NCBI GenBank assembly: GCA_977016875.1
Contig: CDRNST010000180.1
Span: forward strand, 930,001 to 994,000
Reading direction: 5' to 3'
DNA length: 64,000 nt
From: Pavona decussata
Taxonomy: Eukaryota
The stretch's first letter is position 1, and each line of letters opens with the position of its first letter. The notes below the pieces were generated by a model, which was given only the letters and a program-made list of their open reading frames with translations, was not told where the DNA came from and ran no database searches. The position numbers and the translations under genes are program-made. Positions 5,726 to 19,829 of this stretch are shown in pieces.

Positions 5726-5781
<56 letters not shown>

Positions 5782-5809
5782 TTCATTCTTACTTGTCTTA
5801 ACAGTCTGA
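1739..5809 (+). CDS. 3' part of LamG/ConA-like domain protein, paralog 1: domain exon 1739-2359 plus terminal mini-exon 5805-5809
   Basis: Exon TTCCAG|AT...CAAG|GTAAG (621 nt, phase 1-1) encodes DPVAFFPLN...SMTMLCWVY...WKFVGASYD...KLWVNG...YFKGRIAQMQVYNSALS (LamG_3/pentraxin-like pattern). Terminal exon TAACAG|TC TGA followed by AATAAA near 5896. No 5' exons recognisable in the window. Confidence 0.8.
3067..5698 (+). mobile_element. Decayed AcademH-like DNA transposon
   Basis: Termini CATTCTCGTCCCCAGAGCC / GGCTCTGGGGACGAGAATG; exact 9-bp TSD GTTTCACCA (3058-3066, 5699-5707); empty site in the paralogous intron at 18248-18256; internal RecQ-like remnants. Confidence 0.8.
4815..5090 (+). pseudogene. 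Frameshifted RecQ-like SF2 helicase fragment inside the transposon
   Basis: AMFPNVPIVALTVSATEKTRDIISNSFEIVDPVII matches the RecQ motif III region (FPxVPxxALTATAT); a downstream shifted frame reads IEAFLLPYIAKLKELRE. Confidence 0.7.
5728..5783. repeat. (TTTA)n microsatellite
   Basis: Direct reading; lies just upstream of the terminal-exon acceptor. Confidence 0.95.
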
Positions 5810-8220
5810 GCCGGCAGAGAAGACCAGTTCAGAAATTAACCACCAAACTAGCTGAAAGCATTGGCTTTAAAACTTGTATTAGATGTCAAGCGCAGAATAA
5901 ATTCATTTCAAAACTGTTCAATGTTTGTAGTACTTTTTTGTGAGACAAAACTTTTCTGTGGAGAATGATGGGTTATTCAGTCAGTAGCACGACCATACAA
6001 AGAAAAAAGAAATCCGAGTTCTCCCAATAAGTCTTCCTCACTTTGTTTAACATGTGAGCAAACGCCACTAAACTTGGCAGCTATTCGTGAAATTGCTTTG
6101 TAAGGAATTTGTTGTAATGGCGTTGACATAAACTATATTATATGTTAATTAAATGGCGTTGACAGGCAGGTTTTCAGAAATTGGACCATTTTTGAATTAA
6201 AACTGACAAATCTCCTACGGTGATTTTTGTACCACTAGATTATTTGGTGTTTTTGCTATTGGTTTTGATAATTTTGAGGTCAGATTTGGTTGATTTCTGA
6301 ATGCGGGGGAATAAAAAATATAAATTGGTTGATCCGCCATGTGATATGACGGCGACCGTTTGAAAATTATGACGTAATTCGCGCGTTACGTCAGCTAACT
6401 AGGCTTCAAAGGAAAGTTTCCCTTCCTACGCTATGCCCATCCCCTAAACCCAGATTGAGGGCCATAAAAAGCTTGATATAGGTTGGGCCGAGTTAAAAAG
6501 GAAACGTGAAGTAATTTAAGTTTCATTCCAACTTAATTTACTTACATAAACATCTCTATCAAATTTCTACCGTTTAATTTAAAAGAAGACGATATTCGTG
6601 TACATCAGATCCTTGCTCGTTCAACTTCGAATTAATAATACTCTTCACTTGCGGGTGTAAAAGCTCCCTGAAAGAAGATATAGCGGTAATCTCTTCGTAA
6701 ATGGCAACGCTTCATAGCGACGTTGCAGGATGTATCGTTCTTAACCAAACCAATACGTGTTCAGAAATGTTCCGCTTCCACGATTGAAGATAATCAGAAC
6801 AATTTCCTACCTTGTTTAAAATTACAATTGCATCGAGCAATTAGCCAAGTCAGACTAAACCATTCTTCTAAACCGTCAATAAATGTTTTAAAGTAAATTG
6901 GAAAGGTAAAATTAATAATAATGGCCAATCCTTCAGTCATGTTCTGTGCATATTAAGTAAGTCCTTCGGCTGATATATTCAAAACGCCCACGTTACCCCC
7001 ACACCTCACTAACCAATGTATTATAGTTCTTTCAAAAAAAGGGAAAAAAAGAGCCACATGAGGTAACATCTGTTCTCTTAGCTCGTTGGCAGCTTAGAGA
7101 TAGCCATACCTCTAGTTTATTATAATATTCATTAACATTTTCAAACATCAAGTGAATATGAGAGTACAGCTTATACACACAGGCCTCAGTCTCCTGAACA
7201 AGAAAAAGGTTATACAGTATTACATAAAGGAGTGCTTGGGAAAAAGAATATCACTAATAAATACTTATCCAGTGTGTTGCTTTTTCCACCTTGCAAACGC
7301 AAGCAAGTAAGATCATCATAAATATCATTGGGTGTGAACACCACCTTAGAATTACTGAGGTCAACTGATTCAGACTGCGCTCTGCCAACTAGTTCATCAG
7401 TTACTGTAAACTTCTTTCTCTTGCTTGCGGACTGTTATCTATCTAAAGAGGGAAAAACACTCGACTCTGGATTACCTAAGATTTGACTTTGCACTTGGAG
7501 TTGCCTGTAATGCGAGAATCTCCAGCGATAGCTTACAGTCCATGCCAGGGCAAGTAGGCTCACGTGTAAATCGCAAGCCAAAGTTGAACAAAGTACAGTT
7601 GAAAAAATATCGAAAACACTTCTGAATGAGGTTAAAATACATCAGTTGTAGCCAGCAGTGCCCATACCCCCGGGCATTAAGAGTTTTGGAAAGCAAACCG
7701 GAAAATGCCTCACAGCGGGGACAAAAAGCTGTTCAAATGCCCCACGATACAGCTAAAAAGATGAGGTGATTTATTCGGTCCTGGGCTTAACTTCATTCTA
7801 ATTCAGACCAAACTAAGTCTTAAACGAGTCTTATTTCTTTATGTTGCTCCAGAGTTCGTTCCTTGTGTACTCTACCATCTCATTTCGTCCTCTTAAACAA
7901 AGTTAATCACAAAGTTTATCGTCTTTGCCGATGAACTTATCAGTGACAGTACTGTGAGGTGTAAATCATGAGACCACGAAATACCTCGGGGTGGACTAAT
8001 GTCTGCCCCCGGGACGGACAATGAGGGAAATGGGGAAGAAAATCTCAAATCTTTTCATCAGCGCTTAAGCACTCAAGCTAACATCTGATTGGAGCATCAA
8101 ATAAAAACGAAAACGTCAATGATATCCGATTGTTATCCGGGGATAAAAACGTGTGACTCTCTGATACTGATCAATATTGGTGATTTCAGTGGTCAGGAAC
8201 AGATCTTGAGCGCTGAGAAA

Positions 8221-11200
8221 ATGCATCACTTCGCCTCCTTTGTCGTGTGTATCGTTTTGGTGGTAATTGTTCAAGGGACAAATCCTAATGAGTCGGACCA
8301 GCACCAAGGTACGGTTAAAAGCCTACGCGGACTGCTGGAAAACGTCTTGAAAAGACTGGAGCGATTGGAAAAGAAAGTGAAGGAACATAGCACAATTCTT
8401 GGTGATTGTTGCCATAAAACTAAAGGTAAGACCGTTTTCGATCATCTTTACCTCCTCTTTACTGAAGCCTACCCAAAGTGAAAAACAACAGTTAACGCTT
8501 ATCGTGTCGTTAATTTGTGAGGTTTGTAAAATTGTGGAATTCCCGCGTAGCAAGTCCGATGAGTCCAGGAGCTCTAAACGACAATAAAATTGTTTTGGCA
8601 GCAATTTAAAAAAGAAAATGTCAATTTAAATTAAGGTTTCTTTGTTCTGAATGGAAAACTACAAAGACTTTTTGGCAAAAACAACGTGCGTCGCGTCACA
8701 GCTATAAAATAAGACGTGATGGAGTATCGGATTAATCGGGTGACTTATGTAGACGCGCTTTGGCGGGAAGTCTCATGTGGAGACAAGCTGTTTCGCTAAA
8801 ATAAGTGTTTCCTCTTAGTGTAATTCGTTGATTGACATTTGATTTATTAATTAACTGCGTCATTGACAGTTGGTGGCGCAAGCGCTAAGTACAGTTGACT
8901 TTGAGTTCCAACACGTTTTCCATGTTAGAGAGCAGTGGTTGTTTTTACCACGCTAACCTGTTCTGCTGACCGGTTTTGCCGACCTGCTTTATACTGGAAA
9001 GTTTTGACTGGTGACGCCACAGAAAAAAGTATTATGTTTTGTAACCGATTGGATTTTGAGTGTTGTAATTTTATATTTCTCGCACGCAATTTTCATGAAT
9101 CGCTAGCTATTAGATTTCAATAGAATTATGTATTGTTTCTTACAGATCCAATAAAACTAAAATTAAAGATTATACAATTCCGTGTCCAGTCATCTATCCA
9201 AGAACCATTTTTCCCCGGACCACACGGTTTTCTTCTTATTTAAGTCTCAAAAGTGCAATTTATTGGGCTCTAATGCGCATACGCTAAGTGTGGGGCAAGA
9301 GTAAGCCTTAGGAGTAAACCCAATATTGAATTTGTCGATGGATCGCGAACGTGACAAAGTTTAAGTTGTGTCAGCTTTTCGCGGTAAAAGCACTCACAGA
9401 CCAGCAACTACGTTTAATACTCACACCAGAAATCCTTTTTTGCAATGCCGCGAGAGGACACCATCTCCGCTTTCAAGCGATTTCTTTTTGAAATACTGAA
9501 AAATGATGGGAGGAAGCAAACCAAGATGTCTTTGGGCGTGTAAAACAAAGATTAAGAGATTTACGTGAATTCAAGTGAAACTCAAGCTCCAGAGAGCAAG
9601 GAATAGTCAAGTTGGGATTAGCGAGTTCAATAGAGTTGGACTTTGCCTTGAGATGTACTTCAAGTTGGGGTTGACTACATCGAACCTTTGAAAGCTGACC
9701 GAAAGCCACTTTAAAAATTAACAGTAAAGAATATTTCAGTCCTAACTGTTTTGGATTCCATTTACTGAGCATACTGATCTCTTGAACTAAATTACTTTCT
9801 TTATCAAGTTCTAGATCCTGTTGCCTTTTTCCCTCTCAATGCCGCGTATGGTACCAAGGAAATCAAGAATCGTGCAGCCCAAGGGGTCCCCAGTGGGGTA
9901 AGTCTGGCTCCAGGCCCTGATGGTAAAGTTAACGGCTCTTATGAGTTTTCCGGAACCGCAAACAGTTATATCGAGTTTTCAAACTCTGAAGGAGGGCCTT
10001 TGGATGTGCGCTACTCAATGACGATGCTATGCTGGGTGTACTATAACGGCCAAGACGGACCTCTCTTTAACTACGAGAAGAGTGCAACTTGGGGAGTGCA
10101 CATGTGGGTGGCCAATGGCCAACTTTTTGTCCGCTTTACAAAACGAGATTACACTTCTACGACCAACTTACTCCACACACCACTGGCTGGTGGATGGAAG
10201 TTTGTTGGTGCGTCTTATGACGGCGGTTCCGGTGACGCAAAGCTGTGGGTCAATGGAGCCGTGGTTCAGAAATTGAACATCGGAGCGGGTCTTGATCTAG
10301 CCACACAAGACAACATCAGAATGGGAGTGAAGACTGGTGATAGAAGGTACTTTAAAGGAAGGATCGCCCAGATGCAGGTGTACAATCACGCCTTCAGTCA
10401 GGAACAAATGGAGGCAATCTATAAAAGGATGCAAGGTACGTCAGTTTTGTTTGTTCAACATTCAACCAAAAACCGTTCTATTTTGGCACAGTGTTTAGAC
10501 CGTCTGTCGAACAAGCATTTCTGACCAGGGATCTTTTGAAGACATGCTCTAAGCTAAAATTAGGTGATTTCTTTTGGTCTACTTTATTGTTATTTTTAGT
10601 AGGAGCACGAAATTTCCTTTAAAATGACACCAAACATGATATCTATGTGTTTGTTTATTTCGCTTGTTGTTTTTTATATATTCAACCTATTGTTTAACTC
10701 TGTATTTCGTGTTTGTAGCTTATACTTAGAGACCACCACATTAGCAAGGCTTTAATTTAATCGGTTTAANNNNNNNNNNNNNNNNNNNNNNNNNNNNNNN
10801 NNNNNNNNNNNNNNNNNNNNNNNNNNNNNNNNNNNNNNNNNNNNNNNNNNNNNNNNNNNNNNNNNNNNNNNNNNNNNNNNNNNNNNNNNNNNNNNNNNNN
10901 NNNNNNNNNNNNNNNNNNNNNNNNNNNNNNNNNNNNNNNNNNNNNTTTATGCTAAAATAGAAAACGCTTCGAAGGAAAAGGGTGGGTGGTATCGAGAGAA
11001 AACATCGTTTTCGTAATGAAAACCGTTGATATCTGACCGAAAGGTTGAAGAATTAGCGTGAATCCTGTAATCCTAAACACATTCCAGGTTAATAACTACA
11101 GCCTCTTTCCCAGATCCCTACACACTTATCGAGCGAACTTAGCGTTTTGTCAGCTCATGCAACGAGTGATGTCAGATTTGACGCAAGGAAGAGTGGGAAG

Positions 11201-14200
11201 TGACTGCTATTTCTTAACATCAAAACCTCTTGTACTGAATTTTAAAATTACTTTCCTAATCAAGTTCTAGATCCTGTTGCCTTCTTCCCTCTCGATGGCG
11301 CGCATGGCACAAGGGAGATCAAGAATCGTGTAGCCCAAGGGGTCTCCAGTGGAGTAAGTCTGGCTCCAGGCCCTGATGGTAAAGTTAACGGCTCTTATGA
11401 GTTTTCCGGAACCGCAAACAGTTATATCGAGTTTCCAAACTCTGAAGGAGGGCCTTTGGATGTGCGCTACTCAATGACGATGCTATGCTGGGTGTACTAT
11501 AACGGCCAAGACGGACCTCTCTTTAACTACGAGAAGAGTGCAACTTGGGGAGTGCACATGTGGGTGGCCAATGGCCAACTTTTTGTCCGCTTTACAAAAC
11601 GAGATTACACTTCTACGACCAACTTACTCCACTCACCACTGGCTGGTGGATGGAAGTTTGTTGGCGCGTCCTATGACGGCGGTTCCGGTGACGCAAAGCT
11701 GTGGGTCAATGGAGCCGTGGTTCAGAAATTGAACATCGGAGCGGGTCTTGATCTAGCCACACAAGACAACATCAGAATGGGAGTGAAGACTGGTGATAGA
11801 AGGTACTTCAAAGGAAGGATCGCCCAGATGCAGGTGTACAACAGCGCCTTGAGTCAGGAACAAATAGAGGCAATGTATAAGAAGATGCAAGGTACGTCTG
11901 CTTTGTTTGTTCAAAATTCCATCGAAAACCGTTCTATTTTGGCACAGTCTTTAGACCGTCTGTCGAACGAGAATTTCTGACCAAGGATCTCTTGAAGACA
12001 TGCTCTAAGCTGAGATTAAGTGATTCTTTTTGTCTACTTGATTGTTTTTTTAGGTAGGAGCACGAAATTTCCTTTAAAATGACACCAAACATGATATTTA
12101 ATTACGTGTTTGTTTACTTCGCATGTTCAGTTTTTTATATATTCAACCTATTGTTTTAATCTGAATTTCGTATTTGTAGTTTATTCTTTGAGACAACCAC
12201 ATTAGCTATGCTTTAATTTAATCGTTTAAAATAGTTTTATTGTTATCATCATCATCATAATCATCATTATCATCATCATCATCATCATCATTATTATTAA
12301 GAGAAATCGACGTTGAGATTTATGCTAAAATAGAAAACGCTTCGAAGGAAAAGGGTGGGTGGCATCGAGAGAAAACATCGCTTTCGTAATGAAAACCGTT
12401 GATATCTGACCGAAAGGTTGAAGAATTAGCGTGAATCCTGTAATCCTAAACACATTCCAGGTTAATAACTACAGCCTCTTTCCCAGATCCCTACACACTT
12501 ATCGAGCGAACTTAGCGTTTTGTCAGCTCATGCAACGAGTGATGTCAGATTTGACGCAAGGAAGAGTGGGAAGTGCCTGCAATTTCTTAACATCAAAACC
12601 TCTTGTACTGAATTTTAAAATTACTTTCCTAATCAAGTTCTAGATCCTGTTGCCTTCTTCCCTCTCGATGGCGCGCATGGCACTAGGGAGATCAAGAATC
12701 GTGTAGCCCAAGGGGTCCCCAGTGGGGTAAGTCTGGCTCCAGGCCCTGATGGTAAAGTTAACGGCTCTTATGAGTTTTCCGGAACCGCAAACAGTTATAT
12801 CGAGTTTCCAAACTCTGAAGGAGGGCCTTTGGATGTGCGCTACTCAATGACGATGCTATGCTGGGTGTACTATAACGGCCAAGACGGACCTCTCTTTAAC
12901 TACGAGAAGAGTGCAACTTGGGGAGTGCACATGTGGGTGGCCAATGGCCAACTTTTTGTCCGCTTTACAAAACGAGATTACACTTCTACGACCAACTTAC
13001 TCCACACGCCACTGGCTGGTGGATGGAAGTTTGTTGGTGCGTCCTATGACGGCGGTTCCGGTCACACAAAGCTGTGGATCAATGGAGCCGTGGTTCAGAA
13101 ATTGAACATCGGAGCGGGTCTTGATCTAGCCACACAGGACAACATCAGAATGGGAGTGAAGACTGGTGATAGAAGGTACTTTAAAGGAAGGATCGCCCAG
13201 ATGCAGGTGTACAAGCACGCCTTAAGTCAGGAACAAATAGAGGCAATCTATAAGAGGATGGAAGGTACGTCTGTTTTGTTTGTTCAACATTCAATCAAAA
13301 ACCGTTCTATTTTGGCACAGTGTTTTGACCGTCTGTCGAACGAGAATTTCTGACCAAGGGTCTCTTGAAGACATGCTCTAAGCTGAGATTAAGTGATTCT
13401 TTTTGTCTACTTTATTGTTTTTTGTAGGTAAGAGCACGAAATTTCCTTTAAAATGACACCAAACATAATATTTATGTGTTTGTTTATTTCGCCTGTTCAA
13501 TTTTTTATCTATTCAACCTATTGGGTACTAAAGAACCCACTCACTGTTCGCAAAGAGTAGGGGACGTAGTTCCCGGTGTTGTGGTCTGGTCTTTGTGCGT
13601 ATATTCCGTATATCCCGGGTCCGCAGTAATTGGCTTTAGCTGTTGCGATATCCCTGTCCATATTGGACAAAGCTAAATAAATAAATATTGTTTTAATCTG
13701 AATTTCGTATTTGTAGTTTATACTTAGAGACGACCACATTAGCTGTGCTTTAATTTAATCGTTTTAAATAAATGGTTTTATTGTTATCATCATCATCATC
13801 ATCATTATTATTAAGAGAAATCGACGTTGAGATTTATGCTAAAATAGAAAACGCTTGGAAGGAAAAGGGTGGGTGGCATCGAGAGAAAACATCGCTTTCG
13901 TAATGAAAACCGTTGATATCTGACCGAAAGGTTGAAGAATTAGCGTGAATCCTGTAATCCTAAACACATTCCAGGTTAATAACTACAGCCTCTTTCCCAG
14001 ATCCCTACACACTTATCGAGCGAACTTAGCGTTTTGTCAGCTCATGCAGCGAGTGATGTCAGATTTGACACAAGGAAGAGTGGGAAGTGCCTGCAATTTC
14101 TTAACATCAAAACCTCTTGTACTGAATTTTAAAATTACTTTCCTAATCAAGTTCTAGATCCTGTTGCCTTTTTCCCGCTCGATGGCGCGCATGGCACAAG

Positions 14201-17200
14201 GGAGATCAAGAATCGTGCAGCCCAAGGGGTCCCCAGTGGGGTAAGTCTGGCTCCAGGCCCTGATGGTAAAGTTAACGGCTCTTATGAGTTTTCCGGAACC
14301 GCAAACAGTTATATCGAGTTTCCAAACTCTGAAGGAGGGCCTTTCGATGTGCGCTACTCAATGACGATGCTATGCTGGGTGTACTATAACGGCCAAGACG
14401 GACCTCTCTTTAACTACGAGAAGAGTGCAACCTGGGGAGTGCACATGTGGGTGGTAAATGGCAAACTTTTTGTCCGCTTTACAAAACGAGATTACACTTC
14501 TACGACCAACTTACTCCACTCACCACTGGCTGGTGGATGGAAGTTTGTTGGTGCGTCTTATGACGGCGGTTCCGGTGACGCAAAGCTGTGGATCAATGGA
14601 GCCGTGGTTCAGAAATTGAACATCGGAGCGGGTCTTGATCTAGCCACACAGGACAACATCAGAATGGGAGTGAAGACTGGTGATGGAAGGTACTTCAAAG
14701 GAAGGATCGCCCAGATGCAGGTGTACAAGCACGCCTTAAGTCAGGAACAAATACAACCAATCTTTAAGAGGATGCAAGGTACGTCTGTTTTGTTTGTTCA
14801 ACATTCAATCAAAAACCATTCTATTTTGGCACAGTGTTTTGACCGTCTGTCGAACGAGAATTTCTGACCAAGGATCTCTTGAAGACATGCTCTAAGCTGA
14901 GATTAAGTGATTCTTTTTGTCTACTTGATTGTTTTTTTAGTAGGAGAACGAAATTTCTTTTAAAATGACACCAAACATGATATTTGTGTGTTTGTTTATT
15001 TCGCCTATTCAGTTTTTTATATATTCAACCTATTGTTTTAATCCGTATTTCGTATTTGTAGTTTATAATACTTAGAGACGACCACATTAGCTGTGCTTTA
15101 ATTTAATCGTTTTAAATAAATGGTTTTATTGTTATCATCATCATCATCATCATCATCATCATTATTGATAGAAATCGACGCTGCGATTTATGCTAAAATA
15201 GAAAACGCTTGGAAGGAAAAGGGCGGGTGGCATCGAAAGAAAACATTGCTTTCGTAATGAAAACCGTTGATAGCTGACCGAAAGGTTGAAGAATTAGCGT
15301 GAATCCTGTAATCCTAAACACATTGCAGGTTAATAACTACAGCCTTTTTTCCTAGACTTTCTGAAAGTCGCTCGCTCGCTTCTCATTGAATGGACTTGGC
15401 GCTCGCTCGCGCTCCGCGCTCGCTCGCTCGAGCTCTGACGATCGCGCTTCGCGCTCTCTAAGCTGGACTTGTAAGCAAGTCTACCTTTTTTCCCAGATCC
15501 CTACACACTTATCGAGCGAACTTAGCGTTTTGTCAGCTCATGCAACGAGTGATGTCAGATTTGACGCAAGGAAGAGTGGGAAGTGCCTGCAATTTCTTAA
15601 CATCAAAACCTCTTGTACTGAATTTTAAAATTACTTTCCTAATCAAGTTCTAGATCCTGTTGCCTTCTTCCCTCTCGATGGCGCGCATGGCACTAGGGAG
15701 ATCAAGAATCGTGTAGCCCAAGGGGTCCCCAGTGGAGTAAGTCTGGCTCCAGGCCCTGATGGTAAAGTTAACGGCTCTTATGAGTTTTCCGGAACCGCAA
15801 ACAGTTATATCGAGTTTCCAAACTCTGAAGGAGGGCCTTTGGATGTGCGCTACTCAATGACGATGCTATGCTGGGTGTACTATAACGGCCAAGACGGACC
15901 TCTCTTTAACTACGAGAAGAGTGCAACTTGGGGAGTGCACATGTGGGTGGTGGTCAATGGCCAACTTTTTGTCCGCTTTACAAAACGAGATTACACTTCT
16001 ACGACCAACTTACTCCACACACCACTCGCTGGTGGATGGAAGTTTGTTGGTGCGTCCTATGACAGCCGTTCCGGTGACGCAAAGCTGTGGGTCAATGGAG
16101 CCGTGGTTCAGAAATTGAACATCGGAGCGGGTCTTGATCTAGCCACACAGGACAACATCAGAATGGGAGTGAAGACTGGTGATGGAAGGTACTTCAAAGG
16201 AAGGATCGCCCAGATGCAGGTGTACAAGCACGCCTTAAGTCAGGAACAAGTACAGGCAATCTTTAAGAGGATGCAAGGTACGTCAGTTTTGTTTGTTCAA
16301 CATTCAATCAAAAACCGTTCTATTTTGGCACAGTGTTTTGACCGTCTGTCGAACGAGAATTTCTGACCAAGGATCTCTTGAAGACATGCTCTAAGCTGAG
16401 ATTAAGTGATTCTTTTTGTCTACTTGATTGTTTTTTTAGGTAGGAGCACGAAATTTCCTTTAAAATGACACCAAATATGATATTTATGTGTTTGTTTATT
16501 TCGCCTGTTCAGTTTTTTATATATTCAACCTATTGTTTTAATCTGAATTTCGTATTTGTAATTTACACTTAGAAACGACCACATTAGCTATGCTTTAATC
16601 TAATCGGTTTAAATAAATGGTTTTGTTGTTATCATCATCATCATAATCATCATTATCATCATCATCATCATTATTATTAAGAGAAATAGACGTTGAGATT
16701 TATGCTAAAATAGAAAACGCTTGGAAGGAAAAGGGTGGGTGGCATCGAGAGAAAACATCGCTTTCGTAATGAAAACCGTTGATATCTGACCGAAAGGTTG
16801 AAGAATTAGCGTGAATCCTGTAATCCTAAACACATTCCAGGTTAATAACTACAGCCTCTTTCCCAGATCCCTACACACTTATCGAGCGAACTTAGCGTTT
16901 TGTCAGCTCATGCAACGAGTGATGTCAGATTTGACGCAAGGAAGAGTGGGAAGTGCCTGCAATTTCTTAACATCAAAACCTCTTGTACTGAATTTTAAAA
17001 TTACTTTCCTAATCAAGTTCTAGATCCTGTTGCCTTTTTCCCGCTCGATGGCGCGCATGGCACTAGGGAGATCAAGAATCGTGTAGCCCAAGGGGTCCCC
17101 AGTGGGGTAAGTCTGGCTCCAGGCCCTGATGGTAAAGTTAACGGCTCTTATGAGTTTTCCGGAACCGCAAACAGTTATATCGAGTTTCCAAACTCTGAAG

Positions 17201-18334
17201 GAGGGCCTTTGGATGTGCGCTACTCAATGACGCTGCTATGCTGGGTGTACTATAACGGCGAAAACGGACCTCTCTTTAACTACGAGAAGAGTGCAACTTG
17301 GGGAGTGCACATGTGGGTGGCCAGTGGCCAACTTTTTGTCCTCTTTACAAAACGAGATTACACTTCTACGACCTTGTTACACCACACACCTCTCGCTGGT
17401 GGATGGAAGTTTGTTGGTGCTTCGTATGACGGCTATTCCGGTGACGCAAAGCTGTGGGTCAATGGAGCCGTGGTTCAGACATTGAACATCGGAGCGGGTC
17501 TTGATCTAGCCACACAGGATAACATCAGAATGGGAGTGAAGACTGGAAATAGGAGGTACTTTAAAGGAAGAATCGCCCAGATGCAGGTGTACAACAGCGC
17601 CTTGAGGCAGGATCAAATACAGGCAATCTATAAAAGGATGCAAGGTACGTGTTTTGGTTGTTCAACATTCAATCGAAAACCGTTCTATTTTGGCACAGTG
17701 TTTTGACCGTCTTTCGAACGAGAATTTTTGACCAACGGTCTCTTGAAGACAGACCCTAAGCTAAGATCATGGTATATCTTTTTATTTACTTTATTGTTTT
17801 TCAATACGAGCACTAAATTGGACTGTTAGTACAATAGGGGAGACATGACGCATGGCTATCGGAGTTTGGATGAATCTAAAATTAAACACACTATCTATAA
17901 ACTTTTCCTTTTAGATTTTTAAACTACCTGAAAAAGAAAAAAATTCTGCTTTGCGCGAATGCGGTATAGAGCATTTTCTTAAAAAGCATTGAATGCCGCT
18001 CTTTTTGTGAAAAGGAAAAGCCAAATTGCCTCCATTCTGATGTTGGGAGAAAGAGCTTCACAAGTGTTGTAAATAATACTGTAATGGTACTATAAGTAAG
18101 CACTGCAATACGCAACGTGGAAAGATTTCATGGCACACAAATTTCCTGCGTAAAAGAATGATGACATCGGTTGTATTGAATGTGCGCTACTTCGTAATAC
18201 CTCTCTACGTCATCTTCGTTTATGTGGTACCCAGATTTCCCGCGTAAGTTTCACCATAGATATTATAGTGTAATATTACTTGTTTGTTTGTTTGTTTTTT
18301 TCTTTATTTATTCTTACTTGTCTTTACAGCCTGA
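8221..18334 (+). CDS. Secreted coiled-coil plus >=6 tandem LamG/ConA-like domain protein (paralog 2). Exons 8221-8425, 9815-10435, 11271-11891, 12644-13264, 14158-14778, 15654-16277, 17024-17644, 18330-18334
   Basis: Exon 1 encodes MHHFASFVVCIVLVVIVQG (signal peptide), heptad-like LRGLLENVLKRLERLEKKV and CC, with phase-1 donor AAAG|GTAAG. Each domain exon is TTCTAG|AT...AAG|GTACG, 621 nt (one is 624), with no stops. Terminal exon TTACAG|CC TGA, AATAAA at 18421. Confidence 0.85.
10770..10945. other. Assembly gap (176 N) inside the array
   Basis: Run of N at the position where other units carry the (ATC)n tract. Confidence 1.
13524..13685 (+). mobile_element. 5'-truncated SINE with Deu/Nin-domain-like core
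   Basis: Absent from sister introns; TSD TATTG (13519-13523, 13686-13690); (TAAA)n tail; core TAAAGAACCCACTCACTGTTCGCAAAGAGTAGGGG...TTCCCGGTGT resembles the Deu/Nin domain. Confidence 0.7.
15353..15483. mobile_element. 131-bp TAGAC...GTCTA element with 10-bp TSD
   Basis: TIR TAGACTT/AAGTCTA; TSD CCTTTTTTCC (15343-15352, 15484-15493); (CGCT)-rich interior; absent from sister introns. Confidence 0.85.
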
Positions 18335-19829
18335 GCCGGCAGAGAAGACCAGTTCAGAAGTTAACCACCAAACTAGCTGAAAGTATTGGCTTCAAAACTT
18401 GTATTAGATGTCAATCGCAGAATAAATTCATTTCAATACTGTTCAATATTTGTTGTACTTTTTTGTGAGACAAAACTTTCCTGTTGAGAATGTGTTATTC
18501 AGTCAGTAGCACGACCATACAAAAAAAAAAAGAAAAAAGAAATCCGAGTTCTCTCAATAAGTCCTCCTGACTTTGTTTAATATGTGAGCAAACGCCACTA
18601 AACTTGGCAACTATTCGTGAAATTGCTTTGTAGGAATTTGTTGTGATGGGGTAATGACAGGCAGGTTTTCAGAAATTGAAACATTCGTAAATAAAAATAA
18701 CTTCGGTAATTTCTGGACCTTTTGTAAACAATAAAAATACGATCAATGTAGAAACTCACACTTGTAATATTTTATCATTGGTTTTCTTGGGTTTTTAATT
18801 GTTCGGTGTCGGGAAACGATACAATATATGCTTTATTTACGGGAATATTTGAATCAAAGGGATAAAAATATTAAAAAGTTCAATGGTTTGTCCTTCTATT
18901 TAAAAATACTTTTTAGTGTAATGCTGATCTAGCTCTGATCAAATGAAGACGCTATTGTTTATTTATAATCCATCAAATATTTTCGCTCGCACGCGATTGG
19001 TCTAAACGCCTCACTTGACCGAATATACCCCAGCTAAAACTGGAGAATATCCGATGATATTCCCCAAGTGATATTCATCAATTTCAAAAACTTCGAGGCG
19101 CGTCTTGTTTACAATTAAAATTAATGTCAAAATGGGGGAACGGTTTGCTCGCTTTTGTGACAGAAGGAGAGATAAACCTGCTGGTCGATAAAGCAGTATC
19201 AGAAAACAACATATGCTCTAAACGTTTTTGACAGTAAACTGCTCTTAAACGAAATGTTCAAATACTCAAGCTCGTTGCTACATGTTGCGAAAAATATTAC
19301 AAGGATAATAACCACCATAGCCTCCATTTGGCTTTAAAAATATGCTCAGATATTTGTCCTTGGACATTATCTGCTCCTCGAAGCTCACAGTTTTCCTCGA
19401 GCTTCGCTCTCGGAAAACTGTTCGCTTCTCGGAACAGATAATGTCCGCGGACAAATATCTGAGCATATTTTCGCGCCAAATAGCGGCTATTGTTTATATA
19501 TGATCCACGTTAGGTAATCTGCTCTCTTTGCTCGTTGGCAGCTTAGATCTCTTATAACTCTAATTTATTATATTCAGCAACAAACTCAAACGACAAGCAA
19601 ATATGATGGTATAGCTTATACAGTCCTCAGTCTTCTGATCAGGAAAAAAGGTTGAACAGTATTATGGGGAGTGACTTTGGAAAAAATAGAACATAACTAC
19701 GAGGCATGTTCTCATTATTTTCAATCCGGATGGCGAGGAGAAGGAAGACTACCTCGGCAAAGATTATATTCACGCTATCACCATTTCTAACCTCACTCAC
19801 TGGTTAGACTTGTGCTATTATCCGTGCCT

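Follow-up and report, generated by a model that had tools for sequence, protein, structure and literature searches.

What kind of protein does a stony coral make from six nearly identical exons arranged as direct repeats? The question is raised by a 64,000-nt stretch of the Pavona decussata genome (contig C180:930001-994000, called the window below, whose positions serve as coordinates throughout), in which six repeats with a period of 1370-1514 nt lie downstream of a short first exon. Exon 1, the array and a tiny terminal exon probably make up an intact gene, at least partly transcribed, which encodes a secreted protein with a coiled-coil stalk and six LamG-type domains. The gene lies on the + strand and is organized as follows.

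8202-8425, + strand: exon 1, with the 5' untranslated region (UTR) from 8202 or earlier and the coding sequence at 8221-8425 (68 codons + 1 nt)
8426-9808, + strand: intron 1, GT..AG, spliced as in the contig of run X2 described below, with a repeat element at about 9340-9652 inside
9809-10435, + strand: domain exon 1, 627 nt, phase 1-1, one Laminin_G_3 domain
10770-10945, no strand: assembly gap, 176 N in intron 2 (between units 1 and 2)
11265-11891, + strand: domain exon 2, 627 nt, phase 1-1, the unit whose structure was modeled
12638-13264, + strand: domain exon 3, 627 nt, phase 1-1
14152-14778, + strand: domain exon 4, 627 nt, phase 1-1
15648-16277, + strand: domain exon 5, 630 nt with one additional Val codon, phase 1-1
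17018-17644, + strand: domain exon 6, 627 nt, phase 1-1, which has diverged furthest from the other units (93-94% nt identity)
18330-18445, + strand: putative terminal exon, in which CC finishes an Ala codon, followed by TGA at 18332-18334 and AATAAA at 18421-18426; the 3' end is approximate

In the sequence, exon 1 opens with an ATG at 8221, contributes 205 coding nt and ends in phase 1 at the donor AAG/gtaaga at 8425 (the slash marks the cut). An earlier note on this DNA had drawn the units at 9815-10435, 11271-11891, 12644-13264, 14158-14778, 15654-16277 and 17024-17644; within these limits each is flanked by AG and GT, free of stops and 621 nt long (624 nt for the fifth). The acceptor seen in an RNA-like contig lies further upstream, which makes the units 627 or 630 nt long and the encoded domain 209 instead of 207 residues. 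The description of the array as a set of six symmetric exons in phase 1-1, with one ConA/LamG-type fold per exon, holds, while the length of 207 residues per unit has to be corrected. The six units are 89-95% identical in protein sequence, and the model spliced with the upstream acceptor has 1324 codons. Rfam and tRNA scans of positions 7000-19500 found no Rfam family and no tRNA.

Parts of the array are contained in 19 sequencing runs of one organism, 14 of which are guessed to be RNA. These 14 runs contain 17-31% of the sampled words, which is about what is expected from the exons alone. Read mapping covered only four runs (X1, X2, X10 and X15) and positions 8100-10769, a stretch with neither N nor an internal long repeat. 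Run X15 covers introns and exons alike and is DNA-like, and the coverage in X1 and X10 is limited to parts of the domain exon. In X2, exon 1 and the domain exon are covered but intron 1 is not, except for one low-depth contig on the repeat element at 9340-9652. The depth of X2 is zero over 8456-9256, a segment which is covered in the DNA-like X15.

A 268-nt contig of run X2 reads from 8202 to 8425 and continues at 9809 onward through a GT..AG joint, with a single mismatch over its whole length. The mapping placed this joint at 8422->9806, with the cut shifted by +3 and 47 nt on the short side. The 44 nt past the joint match unit 1, whereas every other unit differs from unit 1 at five positions there, so that the joint is specific to unit 1. 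The earlier note held that its reading would fall if no transcript joined exon 1 to the array, and the X2 contig contains precisely this splice, from 8425 to 9809. The contig enters the unit after the AG at 9807-9808, whereas the earlier note had chosen the AG at 9813-9814, 6 nt further downstream. All six units have the same added hexamer, TTCTAG, which is read in frame as Val-Leu and retains phase 1-1.

Two in-frame acceptors 6 nt apart (caAG TTCTAG) are thus present at 9807-9814 and at the equivalent site of all six units, and depending on the choice between them each domain boundary would gain or lose Val-Leu. Within intron 1, the depth of X15 rises to ~400 over 9340-9652, compared to ~15-30 in the vicinity, and loose ends occur at 9333 and at 9367-9369; this segment is most likely a dispersed repeat or a transposon fragment.

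The 3' end of the gene (coding end at 18330-18334) is placed by comparative evidence only. The intron after unit 6 is unlike the inter-unit introns and leads to acag/CC TGA at 18330-18334. The 211 nt around 18330 have copies, 88-92% identical, 3' of the last unit in six other genes of the family. All 7 paralogous copies retain the AG acceptor and, after exactly 2 nt, a stop (TGA in six, TAA in one). AATAAA is kept in all five terminal copies that are long enough to include the site. The existence of a tiny terminal coding piece which completes one codon and adds TGA had been proposed from the sequence, and these copies speak for it.

The product of exon 1 begins with a signal-like segment. According to hydropathy, residues 1-19 (Met1-Gly19) contain a 14-residue hydrophobic core (4-17) followed by V-Q-G, and are too short for a membrane span. 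An amphipathic helix of three heptads lies at about residues 32-53, with V or L at 7 of the 8 a/d positions, and is followed by the pair Cys63-Cys64; exon 1 also has one N-E-S sequon. The single-sequence AlphaFold2 (AF2) model shows helices at 2-19 and 27-65, with a predicted local distance difference test score (pLDDT) of 85-92 in the middle of the second helix. The hydropathy, the heptad count and the AF2 helices bear out the signal-like N-terminus, the coiled-coil helix and the Cys-Cys pair attributed earlier to this exon.

Exon 1 has few relatives. A Pfam scan returned no family above threshold; the score against the Matrilin-type trimeric coiled coil (PF10393, Matrilin_ccoil) is 13 bits for a cut-off of 26.3 (E 0.088), a lead only. 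There was no match in a protein-atlas look-up (score 0.75) and no relative among the 270 family members retrieved. Relatives of exon 1 occur in only five other places in the genome. The sole relative found outside it is an unspliced Logan open reading frame (ORF; P0304), which is 81% identical, keeps the Cys-Cys pair and the last heptads, and reads on into the intron. The Logan and ENA ORFs of relatives all run into introns, and therefore give no information on junctions.

The identity of the repeated domain is clear from profile searches. Three units were scanned, and they match Laminin_G_3 (PF13385, of the ConA-like lectin/glucanase clan) with 60.5, 67.4 and 64.9 bits for a cut-off of 27.6 (E 2.8e-16 to 2e-18). 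Laminin G proper (PF00054 / PF02210) is not listed at E <= 0.1 for any of the units scanned, and the Sialidase-N model of the same clan is below its cut-off. A sequence search of the PDB with the domain returned nothing better than E 0.02, and the protein-atlas look-up gave generic LamG clusters only. Per unit there is one N-x-S/T sequon and one cysteine, the latter in the context MLCWVY. Judged by their sequence motif, the sequons in exon 1 and in every unit are hints of a secretory route.

The AF2 model of unit 2, built with 60 relatives, has a pLDDT of 97 and a predicted template modeling score (pTM) of 0.92. It is a two-sheet jelly roll of 15 strands with a C-terminal helix. Foldseek and VIA-align comparisons of this model both give ConA-like folds. 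The matches include the sugar-binding domain 4 of the arabinanase AbnA (Z 22, root-mean-square deviation 2.2 Å over 184 residues), the N-subdomain of the Hc fragment of the botulinum and tetanus neurotoxins (BoNT/TeNT; Z 19-22), the pentraxin domain of PTX3 (Z 17), the CBM40 of sialidases (Z about 16), the short pentraxins (Z 15-16), the pentraxin domain of NP1 (Z 15.6), collagen IX NC4 (Z 14.6) and the N-domain of thrombospondin-1 (Z 14.4). Laminin G (LG) domains give Z scores of 12-13, lower than those of the other ConA-like folds, and the LG domains of agrin and perlecan are also among the matches. This comparison of a model is a fold assignment only, and the similarity to domain 4 of AbnA shows no function for the coral protein.

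Two more specific identities were considered for the domain and rejected. The scores against the pentraxin family (PF00354) are 19.2, 23.4 and 24.3 bits for a cut-off of 25, and involve the C-terminal half of the profile only. The HxCx[ST]WxS signature is absent, and the single cysteine of each unit leaves no partner for an intradomain disulfide. The pentraxin identity put forward earlier is thus not retained, and the domain is Laminin_G_3. Toxin_R_bind_N (PF07953) scores 13.1-15.4 bits for a cut-off of 23.8, and the gene has no other toxin module. A toxin reading of the Foldseek matches was rejected because they concern the generic jelly-roll subdomain only.

The array is young, as the earlier note had supposed. 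Units 1-5 have 96-97% exon identity and about 94-97% intron identity (88.5% for one pair), and the synonymous divergence (dS) among units is 0.03-0.12. In the protein tree, 17 paralogous units form a clade (support 97/97) which excludes the six units of the array. This separation, together with the low dS, indicates that the array grew or was homogenized after the gene split from its neighbors. The central units are the most alike and the edge units are more diverged, which is the pattern left by unequal crossing-over. The array originated recently by tandem duplication of a 1.4-kb unit (one exon and one intron), probably through unequal crossing-over. The ratio of nonsynonymous to synonymous divergence (dN/dS) among units is 0.28-0.80, with a mean of 0.46. 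The units are under moderate purifying selection, and diversifying selection among them is rejected by these values.

How such a protein might work can be outlined from its predicted parts. At its N-terminus, a signal peptide would be cleaved off, leaving a short linker that carries a single N-glycosylation sequon. Next would come a coiled-coil helix, at least ~22 residues long and closed by two adjacent cysteines, and after it six near-identical Laminin_G_3 jelly rolls, with a short helix at the end of each one connecting it to its successor. Through the coiled coil, two or more chains would assemble, to be locked by interchain disulfides of the Cys-Cys pair. With 12 or more equivalent jelly-roll domains on display, the oligomer could bind with high avidity to an extracellular ligand of repetitive structure, for example a glycan or a polymer of the matrix. 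This mode of working would be like that of long pentraxins, collectins or thrombospondin-type oligomers.

The gene model itself depends on the integrity of the assembly, since a six-fold array could be an artefact, with a repeat over-expanded or collapsed and a wrong number of units in the window. The gap at 10770-10945, which sits inside the array, speaks for such an artefact. It begins 334 nt past the donor of unit 1, ends 319 nt before the acceptor of unit 2 and touches no coding sequence; because it is intronic and every unit is symmetric, the reading frame does not depend on it. In the next intron, positions 1-338 are matched by the left flank of the gap and positions 428-746 by the right one. 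Both flanks thus fit one single intron in collinear order, with ~90 positions unaccounted for, and this argues against the artefact. Moreover, the units differ mutually at 15-42 exon positions, and the inter-unit introns measure 740-887 nt and have private indels, as expected of distinct loci and not of duplicated reads. An over-expansion by the assembly is unlikely, the gap may lead to an under-count, and altogether we regard an artefactual six-fold array as highly improbable.

Two observations on the introns belong here. (ATC)n microsatellites of differing lengths are found at 12245-12291, 15134-15162 and 16631-16671, an equivalent position in several inter-unit introns. The gap falls where the next intron has this microsatellite position, which may be a cause of the break in the assembly. 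In the intron after unit 4, the segment 15187-15486 is only 65-77% identical to the other introns. This suggests a private insertion or replacement, and hence that the units are distinct loci.

If the array is real, mature transcripts may still lack some of its units, as a result of cassette skipping or silent units, so that the six-domain product would be one of several or a minor one. Indeed, all units are phase 1-1 with identical splice-site contexts, any subset is therefore in frame, and the neighboring paralogues function with about one, two and six to seven units. On the other hand, none of the six units is broken and purifying selection acts on them, an argument for the translation of each one, and the sole spliced contig joins exon 1 to unit 1 and not to a later unit. 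This alternative seems unlikely to us. A rival that keeps the same gene model deserves more weight, as a tentative possibility: the protein could have a structural place in the organic matrix, extracellular or skeletal, where its coiled coil would cross-link it, instead of being a soluble lectin that recognizes microbes or symbionts. The matches to thrombospondin-1, to collagen IX NC4 and to the LG domains of laminin, agrin and perlecan fit this role. So does the combination of a coiled coil and cysteines, the oligomerization device of matrilins, COMP and thrombospondins (the Matrilin_ccoil score being a hint only), as well as the mean dN/dS of 0.46, with no diversifying selection among units. 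Against it, the best structural matches are carbohydrate-binding modules, and the literature searches returned no papers on the family. We give recognition a slight preference over a matrix role, for the sole reason that the structural neighbors nearest to the model bind sugars.

Several points weigh against the favored reading of an intact gene for a secreted six-domain protein. The splice from exon 1 to unit 1 comes from one contig of one run, which is RNA only by the guess of the software. Read support stops at this joint, the mapping being that of 8100-10769, and extends neither to the unit-unit joints nor to the joint 17644->18330. The depth over the domain exons is not assignable to this gene because paralogues cross-map. 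The conservation around the terminal exon runs into the preceding intron, hence it is not specific to the exon and is supportive, not proof. The gap may hide further 1.4-kb units. A further weakness is the shortness of the coiled coil, for which Pfam gives sub-threshold matches only (E 0.09), and no ligand-binding residues can be named in the domain. Secretion (signal cleavage included), oligomerization, multivalent binding and the class of ligand are what we infer for the protein.

By arithmetic, exons could be skipped and alleles could differ in their number of units, and the paralogues make both plausible. A bolder version of the recognition role would make the array a generator of repertoire. 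Unequal crossing-over would vary the number of units between individuals and cassette splicing would vary valency and composition; with the ~130 related exons, this would provide an individually variable set of oligomeric recognition proteins for microbes or symbionts. The logic would be comparable, by analogy, to that of snail FREPs or arthropod Dscam. The idea is speculative and, in our opinion, very unlikely to be right.

The gene has a large family around it. The 602-Mb assembly contains at least 130 exons of the domain, most of them single open exons and many in arrays. The architecture claimed for the gene in the earlier note stands, but its singularity was overstated: it is one of many genes built from this module. 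A library of 1.84 billion proteins holds 7903 relatives of the domain at E <= 0.001, with multi-domain members in corals, a hemichordate, a brachiopod and amphioxus (Ptychodera, Lingula and Branchiostoma), all unnamed. Literature searches found no papers on the family beyond general remarks on cnidarian pentraxin-domain proteins.

Unit positions and terminal exons on the same contig point to an upstream gene with two units and to another gene with six intact units and a broken one. A paralogue with a single unit lies upstream of the array inside the window.

1733-2359, + strand: domain exon of the one-unit paralogue
5805-5809, + strand: its terminal piece, followed by AATAAA at 5896

Its exon at 1733-2359 encodes a Laminin_G_3 domain 79% identical to the array units and shares their acceptor context (caag/TTCCAG/AT). 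Its terminal piece, acag/TC TGA, lies 3.4 kb downstream of the domain exon; no 5' exon was found for this paralogue. Since these neighbors have about one, two and six to seven units, the number of units has changed repeatedly between paralogues.

Further copies are found on other contigs.

C70:89771-188811, + strand: at least 35 Laminin_G_3 exons within ~100 kb, 36-50% identical to the array units
C319:373860-379700: decayed segmental duplicate of positions 5747-10769 of the window, 85-88% nt identity
C319, just upstream of the duplicate (371643, 372851, terminal piece at 373943): intact-looking two-unit paralogue
C62, - strand, at 4042679, 4077085, 4175979 and 4270104: four genes that share the promoter, 5' UTR and exon 1

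The exons on C70 belong either to a single giant multi-domain gene or to many genes in a dense array. The duplicate on C319 lacks the first 31 codons of exon 1, those for the signal part, and a TAG interrupts its single unit. In the shared part, the four genes on C62 are 73% identical in nt (from window position 8083) and 45-56% in aa, and all of them have the signal, the coiled coil and the cysteines. They continue with different exons, which match no Pfam family above threshold (Laminin_G_3 at E 0.045, 3keto-disac_hyd at E 0.06). From these sequences, the head exon seems to be a small shuffled oligomerization module used by two kinds of genes.

The gene is an ordinary member of a very large uncharacterized coral family, and nothing in it contradicts current knowledge. 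It offers a clean, datable case of the construction of multivalent extracellular proteins in corals, in which one phase 1-1 whole-domain exon was copied six times, and the array is attached to a small oligomerization exon that also heads another set of genes. If the protein is indeed a glycan-binding oligomer locked by disulfides, a pentraxin- or collectin-like recognition design would have arisen independently in corals, and the gene would be a candidate for work in coral immunity, symbiosis or matrix.

The closest proteins are other coral Laminin_G_3 proteins, such as those of Montipora capricornis (XP_068735802.1), Acropora cervicornis (KAK2548223.1) and Oculina patagonica (XP_078350169.1), which are 54-60% identical. 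They share with the array units the N-terminal (DP)VAxFPL and C-terminal GRIAQMQVY motifs, have a signal peptide, and include multi-domain members with 2-5 or more repeats. In these proteins the domain is joined to PAN/apple-like, EGF or other modules, and no relative of exon 1 is present. Among the representatives returned, all unnamed and uncharacterized, none has a coiled-coil head followed by six copies.

The best superpositions are those with bacterial LamG_3-type carbohydrate-binding modules and with the clostridial Hc N-subdomain, which belong to the same Pfam clan and resemble the units in fold only; the identity is 12-18%, and the coral gene has no toxin, protease or translocation domain. 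Thrombospondins and COMP, matrilins and collagen IX offer another parallel, with a short coiled coil and nearby cysteines for oligomerization, and a LamG-type fold in thrombospondin-1 and NC4. They differ in the order and number of modules, and the coral gene lacks EGF, TSP, VWA and collagen modules. The long pentraxins (PTX3, NP1/NP2) have a signal peptide, an N-terminal coiled coil with cysteines that form interchain disulfides, and then a jelly-roll recognition domain, as predicted here. They have one pentraxin domain per chain, whereas the coral protein has six Laminin_G_3 domains that fall short of the pentraxin profile and lack its signature. By analogy, this resemblance may point to a possible way of working, rather than to membership of the pentraxin family.

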